The notes: generated by a model from the letters alone, not told the origin. 64,000 nucleotides of DNA from Marsupella aquatica (GCA_973895155.1 OZ316899.1:1201573-1265572), one strand, 5' to 3'; positions 23,193-39,470 are shown, numbered from the stretch's first letter. A program made the numbers and translations.

Positions 23193-23786
23193 CGGAACAT
23201 TGTCCCGTCGGTGATTATCCATTATCAAGTCAAAAATTAATTTAGCCATTGTTAATATTCTCACAAACCGCACGGAACACTGTCCTGTCCCTCCATAAAA
23301 ACAAACTCCAAAAATACCAGATAACATCGGATTATTAGAAACCCGATATCCGTCCTTCATATCTTCAACTGTCCTGGCGGAACATTGTCCCGTCAGTTGG
23401 TCAAAATCAATTGGAATGATCTCCCAGAAGAGACATCCACATAAATAAAACTCAAATTAATTACCTTTCGGTGTCACCAATCTTCCACTGTTTTGGCGAA
23501 ACAGTGTTCCCTATGTCGGGGAGAATAAATTCTCGGTATCTCGAATATGAGATATCCTGATAAATATCAGTCAAAAAATTCTATCGGACTAATCTTGAAC
23601 TCTGCCGGCGGAACAGTGTTCCGTTTGACGGTGAAAATAAGTTGGGGGTCTCTGAAAGAAGATAATCCTCATAAATAAAATGGAAAAACATCTAGCGGCC
23701 ACCTAACTAACTCTGACTCTCGCTCTTCGGCTAATACTTATTCTTTGAAACTCCAGCATAAGGAACCCCCACGGGACGGTGTTCCG
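23193..23786. promoter_or_regulatory. Cluster 1 of the 15 bp palindrome CGGAAC-N3-GTTCCG (6 copies), upstream of the transposase
   Basis: Copies start at 23193, 23273, 23378, 23497, 23609 (perfect arms) and 23772. The regulatory role is inferred. Confidence 0.75.
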
Positions 23787-24889
23787 TCGCCCTCTCCCTC
23801 CAGGTATTAAACATTTCCCGATCCGACATGACTCTTTTAAGACCTTCGTTCAGAAGAATCTCTCAGACATGACACAAGACCAAGTTTGATTTTCAGGAGA
23901 GAGTAAACCTAGTATCCAGTCAGAAGAGCTTGAATATCTCTAGAATCTAATGAGATCATGAGAAATGAATCCTAATTGAGTCAGAAGTTGGGATATGAAG
24001 TTCAAATTGATTTGAACTGAAATGAACTGATCTCATCTTAAACAAGAGTCTCACAAGAGCACGATCTCATCTAAAACAAGAGATATCACAAATTAAACCT
24101 TGCGAGTACCTTCTTCGATGACCAAGACTTGTCTCCAACTCAGTCTCAGATTGTGGACAAAAAACGATTAATCTCTGATACCTGATTCAATGAACCGTCG
24201 AGTCTCGAAGATTGTTGGTTCACACGCAAGCTCCAAATCAGCGAGAACGCAGATGCTAAACTTGTTCTCCGCCTTGCTCCACGATGCACAAATGGAAAAT
24301 GAAATGGAAAGAAGGGTCTGAAAACAGAATACCCATCCCGTCTTGCTCACCTTCAAGGTTTTTGGGGGGAAATTCAAAATTCAAAATTTGAAAATCAGAA
24401 GTGAACACTTGTACTGGATCCGCATGTGCGCGGACCAAATTTGAAATTTGAAATTCAAAAGCTGAAACTGTACACTCTCACGTGAGGTCTTGTACATGTG
24501 AGCAGACCTTCGGATGTCATGACTGTACACATATTACTGTATATATTCATTTAGGTAACGTTCCCGGTATTGTTCGGACCAAAGTCAGTCACCATAATTT
24601 TCATTGTTAGTCAGAATACTTTCTTGACCATCTATGTATATAATTTTATGCACCCATACAGTACGCTACCCATGATAATCTATGTCATAAGAAGAATTTA
24701 ATTGATTGTAAATTTTATATTTAATTGATTTAATTTTATACTGTAATAAAAAACATCAAAACCAAAAAAATAGTATAAAAGCCGTAAAAGAGTGGGGGTG
24801 GGGTGTGGGATCAAAAAAATGAAAAATACAAAGCCAAAAACAATTTTTAGCTGGTGATAATACACTATTGTTGTGACTCATTTTTTGCC

Positions 24890-25520
24890 CCATGACATCT
24901 TTTACTAGTCAGATAACATTTTTGGGGCAATTAATATGTCTTCTACTACTTAGACATGTTTTGGGCAGTGATATTTGTTGCTTAATGACATCTTTTGAGC
25001 TGGAAATTTCTGGATAATTTTTGCACATCTTTTCATTATTAATGATATTTAATGCTACGACATGTTTTACTTCACAACATCTATCAATGAGTAATGACAT
25101 TTAATTTTTTACTTGACGACAGCTTTGGAATCATGACATAGTTTTACTTTACGACATCTTTGACATTATAACAACATCTTTTTACTTGACCACACCGATC
25201 TTGGACATAACGACGTTATTGGCATATGTTTTCCTTGATGACATATGTTTTACTTCACAACAACTTTGGCAACACGATCTCATTTTACTTGACAATATCT
25301 TTGACATAACAGCATCTTTGGCGGCCCGACATCTTTGGCATCTTTACAACATCTTGGGCAACACGACATTTTTTATTAAGAACACCTAGTTGGGCACACA
25401 ATATTTTTTTCTCAATGATGTTTTGGGCAACACAATATCTTTTTTTTTCAATGACATATTGGCTAACACAATATGTTTTTCCTCAAGGACATTTTAGCCG
25501 ACACAACATCTTTTTTCTCA
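24890..25520 (+). repeat. Degenerate ~25 bp minisatellite (ACRACATCTT core)
   Basis: Many spaced ACAACATCTT/ACGACATCTT/GACATCTTT units; inverted copies at 26530-26710 and 27790-27915, direct copies at 27970-28110. Confidence 0.75.
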
Positions 25521-36139: not shown

Positions 36140-39100
36140 GACCTTGAGACCATTCAAGAAGGAGAGGTCGGAGTCCACCCAAGAGAATCGATCTCCAGGA
36201 TGAGGAATTTGAGTCGGGTGACGAAAAAGAGAATGAGAAATCCGATCCCGAGGAGGGGCCACAGGATGATCTTCATGACGACGCCGATTGGGAGAACAAG
36301 CAAGAGTCTAATGATGACAACGATGATGATGACAACGAAGCAGACTCCCGCGAAGGTGAACTACGTTCAAAAACCCGATGTGATCACGAAGGAAGGCAAT
36401 TTCATCGAGATGAAGATGATGAAAGCAAATCAACAAATGCAGATTCTGGGAATGAATATTTGTCCCCACGGTGGGAGACCGAAAAGTCAGACGGAGAATC
36501 GGAGGATTCTGAGAGTCGGGAAAGAGAGGCCGAGAAGTTGAGGAAAAAGAAGGCGGAGTTAGAGAAAGAGCTCGAGTTGGCAGAGAGAAAACTCAAGTTG
36601 GACTTGAAATCTGGCTCCGGATCAAAGCAGAATGTGGATGAGGGTGAGACTTTGGGAAAAAAGGAAAAGAAAGTATACGTCTTGAATAAGAAAAAAAAGG
36701 AAAGTGAAGATAGGGAGAGGAAGGAGAGACAGAAAAAGGAACGGCGGGAGAAAGAGGACAAAGAGAAGGTGCTCCAGGAAGAAGAGTGTAAGGAGAGAGA
36801 GAAGAAAGAGAAGGACGAGGAACAAGAGCGGAAGGAGAGGGAGAAGAAAGAGAAGGACCAGGAAGAAGAGGGGAAGGAGAGGGAGAAGAAAGAGAAGGAC
36901 GAGGAAGAACGAAAGAAGAAGAAAGAGGATGAAGACCAAGATAAAGGGAACCAGGAGGAGGAAGAGAAGAAGGGGGAGGAAGACGATGAAGATAAGGAGA
37001 AGGACGAGGAGGAGAAGAAGGAGGGAAGGAGCAACATGAAGAGACTGAGAGGAAGGAAAAAGAAGAGGGGGAGAGTCAAGAGGCAGATGATGAACAAAAT
37101 GAAGAGGAAGACAGGGAGAAGAAAGAAGAGGAAGGGAGGAAGAGGAGAGAAGCTGAACAGAGAGAAGAGTATGAGAGGAAAGATTCAGAGAGGAAGGAGT
37201 TGGAGAAGAAAGAATTGGAGAAAAAAGAGAGGAAAGAGAGTGAAAGAGAAGAGAAGGAAAGAGAAGAGAGGGAGAGGAGAGAGGGAGAAGAGAGAGAGAA
37301 GAGAGAAGCAGAAGAGAGAGAAGCGAGGGAAAGAGGAGAGAGGGAGAGGAGAGAAGCTCAAGAGAGAGATATTATATATAGATATCCATAGATATATTAC
37401 ATCCTGCATTAACGCAGGTCCTATTGTTCTCTATTGGCCATTCCTTGATTCAACATTCAATCATATGCAGAGTATCGATCATACATTCACACATACATTC
37501 ACACATACAGGTTTCGGTACTGCGAACATCTGTTAACCATGGAAGTAAGACTTGCTTATTCTGTATAACTACTCTTATTTATAAACTGTCAATTTTCAAA
37601 ATAACTAGATCTATAAAGCTGAGTATCTTTCGATGCTGAGCACTGCTTGGTGACAGTGGTACTCAAACGCTGTGTCCATAGCATTGAGCATGGACCATAT
37701 TTTTTTACCGGGAATGGACGGACTGTTTCCATTCACAATTCCAATGTCTTCGTTCAGCCCCCGCCATTGGATTGAGATTGTGCTTTAGTAGGCACAATTT
37801 CTAGTCCCATGTTTCTGCAGCGATGTCTAGACGGCTGCGGGGAGACATGGGCCGGAAAAAGTCGAGTCTCCCAAGCCTTGTTACGTTCCTTTTTATTATT
37901 AACTTCAACATCACATTCATGCATACCAATACGTCGTGAATGGTATAGAAAAGAAGGAGCAACATCTGCTGTAAAAAAGTGTGAGCTAGCACCTGATTTG
38001 GTGGGTTGCCCATTGAGCCACGACAGGTTGTGTGTCACTGTGTTGCTTCAGCAGTCCTTGATTCTTGGTCTGCGCTGCTGGTCCCACGATCTCCTTGCCA
38101 GTGCAGTGTGTCCTCTTACTCTGCCATGCATGTCAGCCTATGCTTCCCACAGGGTGTGTGCTTCTTCACCTATCGAGTGTTTTCAGAGAAATGTAAGCTC
38201 TGTGGCTGGAGAGGAGAGAAGCTGAACAGAGAGAAGAGTATGAGAGGAAAGATTCAGAGAGGAAGGAGTTGGAGAAGAAAGAATTGGAGAAAAAAGAGAG
38301 GGAAGAGAGTGAAAGAGAAGAGAAGGAAAGAGAAGAGAGGGAGAGGAGAGAGGGAGAAGAGAGAGAGAAGAGAGAAGCAGAAGAGAGAGAAGCGAGGGAA
38401 AGAGGAGAGAGGGAGAGGAGAGAAGCTCAAGAGAGAGAAGAGAAGGAAAGAGGAGAGAGGGAGAGGAGAGAGGGAGAAGAGAGAGAGAACCAAGGGAAAG
38501 AGAAGAGAGGGAGAGGAGAGAAGCTCAAGAGAGAGAAGAGAAGGAAAGAGAAGAGAGGGAGAGGAGAGAGGGAGAAGAGAGAGAGAAGAGAGAAGCAGAA
38601 GAGAGAGAAGCGAGGGAAAGAGGAGAGAGGGAGAGGAGAGAAGCTCAAGAGAGAGAAGAGAAGGAAAGAGGAGAGAGGGAGAGGAGAGGGAGAAGAGAGA
38701 AGCAGAAGAGAGAGAAGCGAGGGAAAGAGAAGAGAGGGAGAGGAGAGAAGCTCAAGAGAGAGAAGAGGGGGAAAGAGAAGAGAGGGAGAGGAGAAAGCGA
38801 GAAGAGATGGAGAGGAGAAAGCGAGAAGAGATGGAGAGGAGAGAAGCTGAAGAGAAAGAAGACGATGAGAGGAGAGAGGGAGAAGAGAGAGAAGAGAGTG
38901 CAAGACAGGATCGGGAGAGAGAACAAGATGAAGAGACGGACAGAAAAACTGAAGGGCAATCGAAAAGGGAAAGGAAAGAAGTTGATAGTGAACAAGATAT
39001 GGAGTGGGCGCCTGATCCGCTCAACAATGAAGCAAATGACTTCCTCCATTTCTCAGCTGACAATACGAGCTTGGACATGGCGACTGATATGCAATGCGCG

Positions 39101-39200
39101 GATACTTTGAGGGAGTTAAGACTCCCGTTTGGGGGACCAACGATTGAAGAAACAGAAGTTATCAAAATTGGAGTCTGGAAAGAGAAAACTCGATTTTGAT
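36140..39200 (+). repeat. Purine-rich coding tandem repeats (D/E-rich, then E/K/R-rich coiled-coil-like tract), frameshifted
   Basis: GA-rich DNA; the natural frame reads EREEKEREERERREGEEREKREAEERE...; the unit GAGAAGCTCAAGAGAGAGAAGAG recurs about every 100-120 bp in 38420-38770. Confidence 0.8.
37369..38209. other. 841 bp unrelated insert flanked by a 228 bp direct duplication
   Basis: 37141-37368 is repeated at 38210-38437; the intervening DNA has ordinary composition. Confidence 0.75.
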
Positions 39201-39470
39201 GACTCTTCTAATAATGACTTCATGAAGCCGCGGAACACTGTTCCGCCAGAGACCACTTCATCTCGGGACGGCAATTCGAGTCTTCATGGGACTGTAAAAG
39301 AGATATTGTCGCTATCAGATTTGAAAGCCATAAACTCGAGATCAGAGTCTGCTAGAGTCTGCTTCTTTGCGAGTTCCAAAGGTACCATTTCTGGAATTTT
39401 AGTGAAGCTTTAGACGGTTTCAACTAGTGTGGAACGAATAAGTGGCTAAAATAAACTTTGATTTTGCAGA

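Follow-up and report, generated by a model that had tools for sequence, protein, structure and literature searches.

The window analyzed here, a 64,000-nt stretch of Marsupella aquatica DNA, harbors a 22.6-kb transposon (19491-42125) that has 19-bp terminal inverted repeats (TIRs) and a 4-bp target site duplication (TSD), TGGT, on both sides, and that carries in its interior 21 copies of one 15-bp palindrome, CGGAAC-N3-GTTCCG (CGGAACNNNGTTCCG). We propose with moderate confidence that these palindromes form a cluster of sites to which an element-encoded protein binds as a dimer in a sequence-specific manner. Most likely this protein is the transposase or an N-terminal isoform of it, which would act on the element's own promoters. 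Protein binding at the sites, the role of the transposase as the binder and an effect on transcription or silencing are inferred in this proposal. An original prediction made from this DNA had put the palindromes forward as candidate cis-sites for an element-encoded protein, and the comparison with four relatives, each carrying arrays of its own, now makes this the best-supported reading.

Number, placement and composition of the palindromes

Exact copies of CGGAACNNNGTTCCG occur four times in the window (at 23609, 31256, 36012 and 39231), against 0.01 expected from dinucleotide-preserving shuffles. When up to two mismatches to CGGAAC-N3-GTTCCG were allowed, 18 matches were obtained versus 1.86 expected, and 17 of the 18 fall within 23193-39245. 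The enrichment of the palindrome is real and non-random. Four further degenerate copies (30751, 30795, 30939 and 31144) were read in the second of the two arrays described below, bringing the total to 21, composed of six copies on the transposase side, eleven on the cargo side and four dispersed ones (6 + 11 + 4). The oriented copies yield a fuller consensus, aCGGrACrGTGTTCCGc, in which the left arm is less conserved than the right arm. The heat-shock element and the STAT, E2F and nuclear-receptor half-sites were rejected as counterparts on spacing or sequence.

A weight matrix was built from the 21 sites, which makes it circular for those sites and fair for the rest of the window. At a threshold of at least 10 bits, all of the 21-22 sites that it returned fall within the element, and the 41.4 kb of the window that lie outside the element have none. 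There were also no sites near either TIR (none less than 3.7 kb from the left TIR and none less than 2.9 kb from the right), and neither the TIRs nor the subterminal DNA contain a related motif that could represent subterminal transposase-binding repeats of the En/Spm, Ac or Harbinger type. About 21 copies had been predicted, with none outside the TIR-bounded element and none at its termini, and a weight-matrix scan had been suggested as the check; the scan bears out each of these points.

Two arrays mirror each other between the transposase gene and the cargo genes. Array 1 (23193..23623, minus strand) consists of five copies, at 23193, 23273, 23378, 23497 and 23609, spaced 80-119 bp apart, and ends 64 bp before the transposase open reading frame (ORF; 23129, minus strand). 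Its weight-matrix scores are 17.9-28.2 on the minus strand versus 9.5-23.1 on the plus strand. Array 2 (30706..31270, plus strand), defined by reading and by the weight matrix, has eleven copies, at 30706, 30751, 30795, 30818, 30912, 30939, 31036, 31095, 31144, 31178 and 31256; part of it is an 83-bp duplication, and it ends ~170 bp before the first cargo ORF (31437). The sixth copy on the transposase side (23772..23786, plus strand) has the CCCCA flank typical of array 2, and, like all eleven copies of that array, it has its highest score on the plus strand. We therefore take it as the probable first unit of array 2, severed by a central insertion block. The two units diverge, with the transposase gene pointing to the left, the cargo genes pointing to the right and an array at the 5' side of each; array 1 has the orientation of the transposase gene and array 2 that of the cargo genes. 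Before insertions split it, the DNA between the two units was probably a single divergent intergenic region of ~1.4 kb that contained 17 sites.

The central block (23787..30700, 6.9 kb) is free of the motif and is made up of nested transposable element debris. It contains arrays of a 35-bp repeat with inverted-repeat pairs, mainly at ~24880-28480 with some reaching 23734, as well as a fragment of a copia-type integrase (26953-27790). The 35-bp repeats are both direct and inverted (~24880-28110), one inverted-repeat pair being 25938-25973 and 28443-28478. No TIR or long terminal repeat (LTR) pair spans 23787-30700, which speaks against a single insertion as the origin of the block and points to several nested pieces as its probable makeup. 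In sequence the block looks like another non-autonomous DNA transposon with subterminal repeats plus captured or nested retroelement debris.

The remaining four copies, all on the plus strand, are dispersed along the cargo side. One (32677..32691) lies 50 bp before an ORF opening at 32727, the first ORF of a putative ParB-like gene, and a second (34061..34075) lies within 33975-34300, a stretch that is skipped by a diverged paralogous contig and is probably an intron. The third, an exact copy (36012..36026), occupies the gap between an ORF ending at 35962 and an ORF opening at 36098, where paralog depth is near zero. The fourth, also exact (39231..39245), comes after a low-complexity ORF rich in E and K (ending at 39199) and before an ORF for an Ulp1 protease (39679). 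Beyond the motif, none of the four aligns with another or with the array units. The palindrome had been said to mark every transcription unit of the transposon. Judged from the gaps between ORFs only, that description holds insofar as the motif occupies non-coding DNA beside ORF starts, but the copy at 39231 follows an ORF.

The diverged paralogous contig aligns in blocks (up to 32918, 33270-33296, 33468-33559, 33825-33975 and from 34300 on) that provide an approximate exon map of the ParB-like gene, and several paralogues at 80-90% identity are indicated by depth over 32173-35915. Between two of the single copies, 36460-39199 is a purine-rich, coding-like stretch of low complexity, rich in E, K and R; it has GA-rich tandem repeats with periods of 15-218 bp, and the skew is about +0.3 to +0.4 for GC and for AT alike.

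Mean pairwise identity between copies is 0.78 over the 15-base motif versus 0.31-0.36 in the 15-bp flanks. Of the 42 CpGs counted in the motif copies, 33 are preserved, and a CpG-to-TpG/CpA change accounts for six of the nine that are lost. The CpG observed/expected ratio is 1.03-1.06 in the arrays, or 0.87-0.90 when the motif is masked, as compared with 0.48 in the transposase body and 0.49 in the central block. Sparing of the CpG-containing arms, another feature noted in the original prediction, agrees with these ratios, although the counts are small (28 and 47 CpGs). The CpG content of the arrays fits long-term protection from methylation and hints at hypomethylation.

Different palindrome arrays in related elements

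The N-terminal transposase ORF of 471 amino acids (aa) has one homologue in a word-indexed database, P0001 (42% identity), and a profile of the two identified 294 relatives in an exhaustive library. The comparison used relatives with retrievable DNA and at least 1.8 kb upstream of the ORF; L003, L004 and L005, contigs of 3.8 kb, reach just 75-334 bp upstream of it and were uninformative, and one metagenome scan for more loci found nothing. The transposase N-terminus of the relatives is 17-42% identical over the whole alignment, rising locally to 52-70% in the core for L007.

L002 from ENA, which extends L001, carries 30 copies of CACGACC-N4-GGTCGTG, of which 24 form a 56-bp tandem array ending ~140 bp before the transposase ORF. 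The other six form a second array, 10.5 kb from the first and beside a small divergent ORF; the two arrays have only the palindrome in common, not the repeat unit. The layout of the two L002 arrays (5615-6188 and 16742-18378) is like that in the window, each array standing beside an outward-reading ORF. Array A has a higher-order period of three units (central CGCC / CACC / TGCC), and the end of a host gene with a Sec7 domain, at 3658, places the second array within 2 kb of the element's end on that side. L006, also from ENA, has ACACGGT-N-ACCGTGT in 16 copies at two mismatches or fewer and 23 at three or fewer, mostly with a 24-bp period; an interval of 215 bp, which contains a TATATA box, separates the end of the array from the ATG.

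L007, from an NCBI genome assembly, has 11-13 copies of GCGAGCC-N2-GGCTCGC, each inside a palindrome of ~24 bp, with a period of 65-66 bp and an array end ~170-230 bp before the ORF. Its terminus (AACCCCAATTTAGACAAAA / AACCCCAATTTAGACAAAACCGG) is near-identical to the TIR of the window's element, and because of this near match we place L007 in the same transposon family. Despite the shared family, the L007 palindrome is unrelated to that of the window. The TIR tip in the window (AACACC) matches the motif core, which is treated as coincidence because L007 has no such match.

Two further relatives come from Logan. L010 has nine copies of AGTCTACA-N10-TGTAGACT in diverged units of 100/198 bp that end 230 bp before the ORF, and L009 has three to four dispersed copies of a 19-bp palindrome, GGTCGCCTG-C-CAGGCGACC, one of them 20 bp before the ATG. 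The most distant relative, L008 from ENA, has ~60 direct repeats of the pentamer AAGGC, and no palindrome, in dense arrays directly before the ORF; the pentamer arrays lie at 1179-1378 and 1556-1772. For each relative's palindrome the chance expectation is ~0.

Because the relatives, including L007 of the same family, carry unrelated palindromes at the same position, a private array of a dyad-symmetric motif on the 5' side of the transposase gene is, on the sequence evidence, a trait of the lineage, with fast turnover of the motif. The VANC proteins of Arabidopsis had been cited as a parallel in the original prediction, and a VANC-like pattern of co-evolution is seen in the four relatives, each of which has a distinct palindrome array of its own in the corresponding place.

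Such arrays could in principle be neutral by-products of tandem-repeat dynamics in non-coding DNA, devoid of function. Those of L002, L006 and L007 are regular tandem repeats, and the non-coding parts of transposons often contain satellite-like repeats. However, the units have diverged with the palindrome kept in the window, in L002 (array A versus array B) and in L010; the four dispersed copies in the window share nothing but the motif; and five lineages have the same architecture, without exception dyad-symmetric and on the transposase 5' side. A purely neutral origin is therefore, in our judgment, the least probable of the explanations considered.

Another explanation is that each lineage amplified the site of a different dimeric host transcription factor and thereby obtained a strong enhancer or promoter. 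The arrays adjoin ORF starts, in L006 with the TATATA box in between, they are CpG-island-like in composition, and transposons do amplify host factor sites, for example E2F sites in miniature inverted-repeat transposable elements of Brassica. A host factor is nevertheless less easily reconciled with five related elements having five unrelated palindromes with spacers of N1, N2, N3, N4 and N10, a pattern easier to account for if the binder travels with the element. The motif also never occurs in the 41 kb of DNA surrounding the element, and CGGAAC-N3-GTTCCG is not known to match a plant factor site. We consider amplification of host factor sites unlikely.

The dyad symmetry could also act at the level of nucleic-acid structure. 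Arrays transcribed within 5' untranslated regions (UTRs) or introns would fold into successive hairpins, which could regulate the transcript or serve as a source of small RNAs; alternatively, the DNA could form cruciforms. Predicted hairpin energies range from -6.4 kcal/mol in the window to about -20 kcal/mol in L002 array B and L007, and inverted repeats of 117 nt arise in L007 from units of opposite orientation. Several ATGs are immediately preceded by sequences resembling splice acceptors; these point to introns in the 5' UTR and hence to possible transcription of the arrays. Departures from symmetry in the window are G.T-compatible on the gene-sense strand in 15 cases versus 4 on the antisense strand. 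This 15:4 bias, however, is due in large part to a single inherited variant (G at position 4) and to two arrays, so that it amounts to about two independent events, and no bias is seen in L002 or L006, where sense and antisense variants are about equal. Stems in the window are only 6 bp long, and the CpG-rich arrays are unlike a small-RNA-targeted, methylated region. A structural role of this kind appears improbable.

Candidate readers of the sites

Neither tblastx of the whole element nor tblastn of nine cargo ORFs detected a cargo homologue in L002 (18.5 kb upstream), L007 (10 kb on each side) or L006. Among the proteins of the array-bearing elements, the transposase alone is shared by all (cargo compared in L002, L006 and L007). 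Since these three elements carry arrays and have no cargo homologue, the arrays go with the transposase and not with the ParB-like gene.

This comparison bears directly on the ParB/parS link drawn in the original prediction, according to which the ParB-like cargo protein would load at the palindromes and mark or bridge the element. The idea is attractive on several counts: one copy lies just upstream of the first ParB-like ORF and one inside the gene; a 135-aa ORF with IIGGQHT has ParB_N-type neighbours in a protein atlas, where a language-model feature match to ParB_N clusters ranked 26 with a score of 0.91; and tandem units each containing a palindrome resemble sopC of the F plasmid. However, four relatives have arrays upstream of the transposase, and L002, L006 and L007 have no ParB-like or other cargo homologue within 2-18 kb. 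The ParB-like ORFs (32727-33500, 33540-33947 and 34111-35481) had no match in Pfam, NCBIfam or PDB sequences, and a Pfam scan identified no helix-turn-helix (HTH) family in any cargo ORF at E up to 10. A 456-aa methyltransferase (MTase)-like ORF had no homologue at E ≤ 1e-3 among 5.8 billion proteins. Moreover, 17 of the 21 sites flank the intergenic region between transposase and cargo, not the ParB-like gene. The ParB/parS link is thus not upheld, and we regard such a module as very unlikely.

Attention turns to the transposase N-terminal ORF (21714-23129, minus strand), for which an AlphaFold model was obtained with a mean predicted local distance difference test score (pLDDT) of 81. In the model, residues 17-84 and 129-190 each fold into a small Tudor/SH3-like beta-barrel. 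Tudor, Agenet and KOW domains are the matches of these barrels, at Foldseek E values of 1e-3 to 1e-2 and VIA Z scores of 7.3-7.8 over whole Tudor domains. The barrels correspond to 'TNP1-like'/DUF8039 modules; their best matches, at borderline scores, are the Tudor domains of PHF1/PHF19 (Z 7.3-7.8) and tandem Agenet H3K9me2 readers (Foldseek E ~2e-3). A transposase with tandem histone-reader-like modules would be of interest in its own right. Residues 228-345 form a conserved helical region, CC-x3-CC...C, with a beta-hairpin and two helices, followed by the start of the catalytic fold. Judging from the model, this Cys-rich helical region could be the sequence reader and is the best candidate for a DNA-binding module.

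A transposase that binds internal sites might also serve transposition itself. The internal activation sequence of phage Mu is a transpositional enhancer; the Mu transposase has a separate N-terminal domain for binding it, and it differs from the sites bound at the ends. An internal enhancer of the same type could bring together the ends of a very long element. The comparative tie of the arrays to the transposase applies equally to this explanation, the elements are long (22.6 kb in the window), and the Mu site likewise overlaps the early promoter/operator region of its element, as is proposed for the arrays here. In the bacteriophage, however, the site is a single one of ~100 bp with operator sub-sites, whereas arrays of 6-30 palindromes are found here. 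The TIRs and subterminal DNA contain no related motif, so the transposase would need two specificities, and the dispersed single copies beside the cargo ORFs would be left unexplained. We give an enhancer of the Mu type little credence, while noting that it overlaps, and is compatible with, the explanation we favor.

That explanation, a dimer of the transposase or its N-terminal isoform acting on the element's promoters, would operate as follows. The sites would fill an originally single intergenic region, mirrored between the leftward transposase and the rightward cargo, and extra single sites lie in later non-coding gaps. Their occupation would give the element self-specific control of its own promoters, by activation, by autoregulation or by protecting the region from silencing. 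Turnover of the tandem repeats would let protein and site co-evolve fast, resulting in a private palindrome for each lineage.

Several observations weigh against this explanation. L008 has pentamers in place of palindromes, so that the trait is a 'short-motif array' and not strictly a 'palindrome'; the difference suggests that the type of site can change together with the protein. The tandem arrays in the relatives are young and homogeneous, and uniformity alone is no proof of selection. Paralogous contigs (at least 80% identity, over 30400-36300) cover the cargo exons and not array 2, which is represented by the window's own contig only. Foldseek with residues 228-345 gave nothing below E = 1, only scattered, non-significant winged-helix and AraC-type rows, and barrels of the Tudor/KOW type read histones or RNA polymerase, not DNA sequence.

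A broader version is more tentative, and we hold it to be doubtful as a whole. DUF7869/Sola-like transposons might carry a conserved and undescribed self-recognition module that combines the Tudor-like barrels, the Cys-rich DNA-binding region and the catalytic core. A dimer on the private, rapidly evolving palindrome array would keep the divergent promoter unmethylated and active, each lineage would control only itself, and cargo genes would gain single sites to join the regulon.

Element context, known systems and significance

The left TSD, TGGT, was read directly at 19487..19490, and the same four bases are at 42126-42129. The left TIR, AACACCAATTTAGACAATA, occupies 19491..19509 (plus strand) with no motif copy within it, and the right TIR occupies 42107..42125 (minus strand), immediately before the right TSD. 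The transposase gene (19860..23129, minus strand) has decayed into several ORFs and has a DUF7869 core, recognized by Pfam with E = 6.6e-22 on 20713-21012 (GHTHEDVD) plus a weaker match on 21237-21602. Both hallmarks of Sola-like / DUF7869 cut-and-paste elements are present, namely TIRs with a 4-bp TSD and the DUF7869 core. The cargo genes (31437..40968, plus strand) were annotated with Pfam and the protein atlas. They include the ParB-like/MTase-like ORFs (32727-35481, plus strand; a putative identity from a protein-atlas lead), a Pfam-supported Ulp1 peptidase C48 ORF (39679-40155, plus strand) and a Pfam-supported NIF/CTD-phosphatase-like ORF (40267-40968, plus strand). Pfam scans of the element ORFs gave only DUF7869, Peptidase_C48 and NIF, plus weak matches at chance level.

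The element is nested inside an LTR retrotransposon with LTRs of ~4 kb at 5823-9162 plus 14094-14747 and at 43478-47456. The two LTRs are 93% identical; a 4.9-kb insertion (9163-14093) interrupts the left one and has 37-bp tandem repeats in common with 57997-59670. Telo-box-like repeats of the plant telomere type (CCCTAAA/TTTAGGG), two units long, are found at 19764-19777, near the left end of the element, and the same two-unit repeats are found in L007 at 9824-9837 and 15339-15352, between the palindrome array and the transposase ATG. These may be a promoter element common to the family, or chance.

In Arabidopsis, the VANC anti-silencing proteins target family-specific motifs that lie in tandem repeats within non-coding DNA of VANDAL elements (PMC5735166). 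Similar to the arrays described here, VANC motifs are short and family-specific, dense in non-coding DNA (upstream regions and introns) and often tandem; they are rare outside the family and differ between related families, which implies co-evolution of protein and site (PMC5735166; PMC10398659). In contrast, the VANC motifs (YAGTATTAY, AGTTGTMC) are asymmetric and in one orientation, whereas the sites here have dyad symmetry and a length of 15-26 bp and lie in mirror image about a divergent intergenic region. VANDAL elements are Mutator-like, while the present elements belong to a different superfamily with a DUF7869 transposase and a 4-bp TSD, and no VANC-family protein was identified among the element ORFs in Pfam scans.

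Spm TnpA and the AtMu1 transposase have been shown to regulate the transcription of their own copies in a sequence-specific manner (bioRxiv 10.64898/2026.08.24.746577). As proposed here, a transposase or a derivative of it recognizes repeated motifs in its own copies and controls transcription in the Spm/En TnpA and AtMu1 systems. The sites of TnpA lie in subterminal regions beside the TIRs, whereas in the window the termini have no sites and distances of 3.7 kb and 11 kb separate the arrays from the ends. The DNA-binding domain of TnpA consists of two tri-helical HTH motifs, and no such fold was recognized here.

Tandem palindromic arrays bound by a dimer encoded on the same replicon are found in sopC/SopB of the F plasmid and in the oriP family of repeats/EBNA1 of Epstein-Barr virus. 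These resemble the present arrays in having tens of tandem units of 24-66 bp, each with one palindrome of 15-26 bp. However, they function in partition or tethering of extrachromosomal DNA, and nothing here suggests an episomal stage. A further difference from sopC/SopB is that the array-bearing relatives L002, L006 and L007 have no homologue of the ParB-type protein.

How transposons discriminate self from non-self is known for few plant families, namely VANDAL/VANC, Spm/TnpA and AtMu1. The present analysis provides a sequence-level case in a barely studied superfamily, in which five lineages from different assemblies have the same architecture and a different dyad-symmetric site each, and it corrects the attractive ParB/parS reading as unsupported. 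If the transposase binds the sites, these lineages would represent natural 'swap' experiments on the co-evolution of protein and DNA specificity and would provide a set of orthogonal pairs of DNA-binding domain and operator. Such binding would also offer a clue to how large cargo-carrying elements keep their promoters open.

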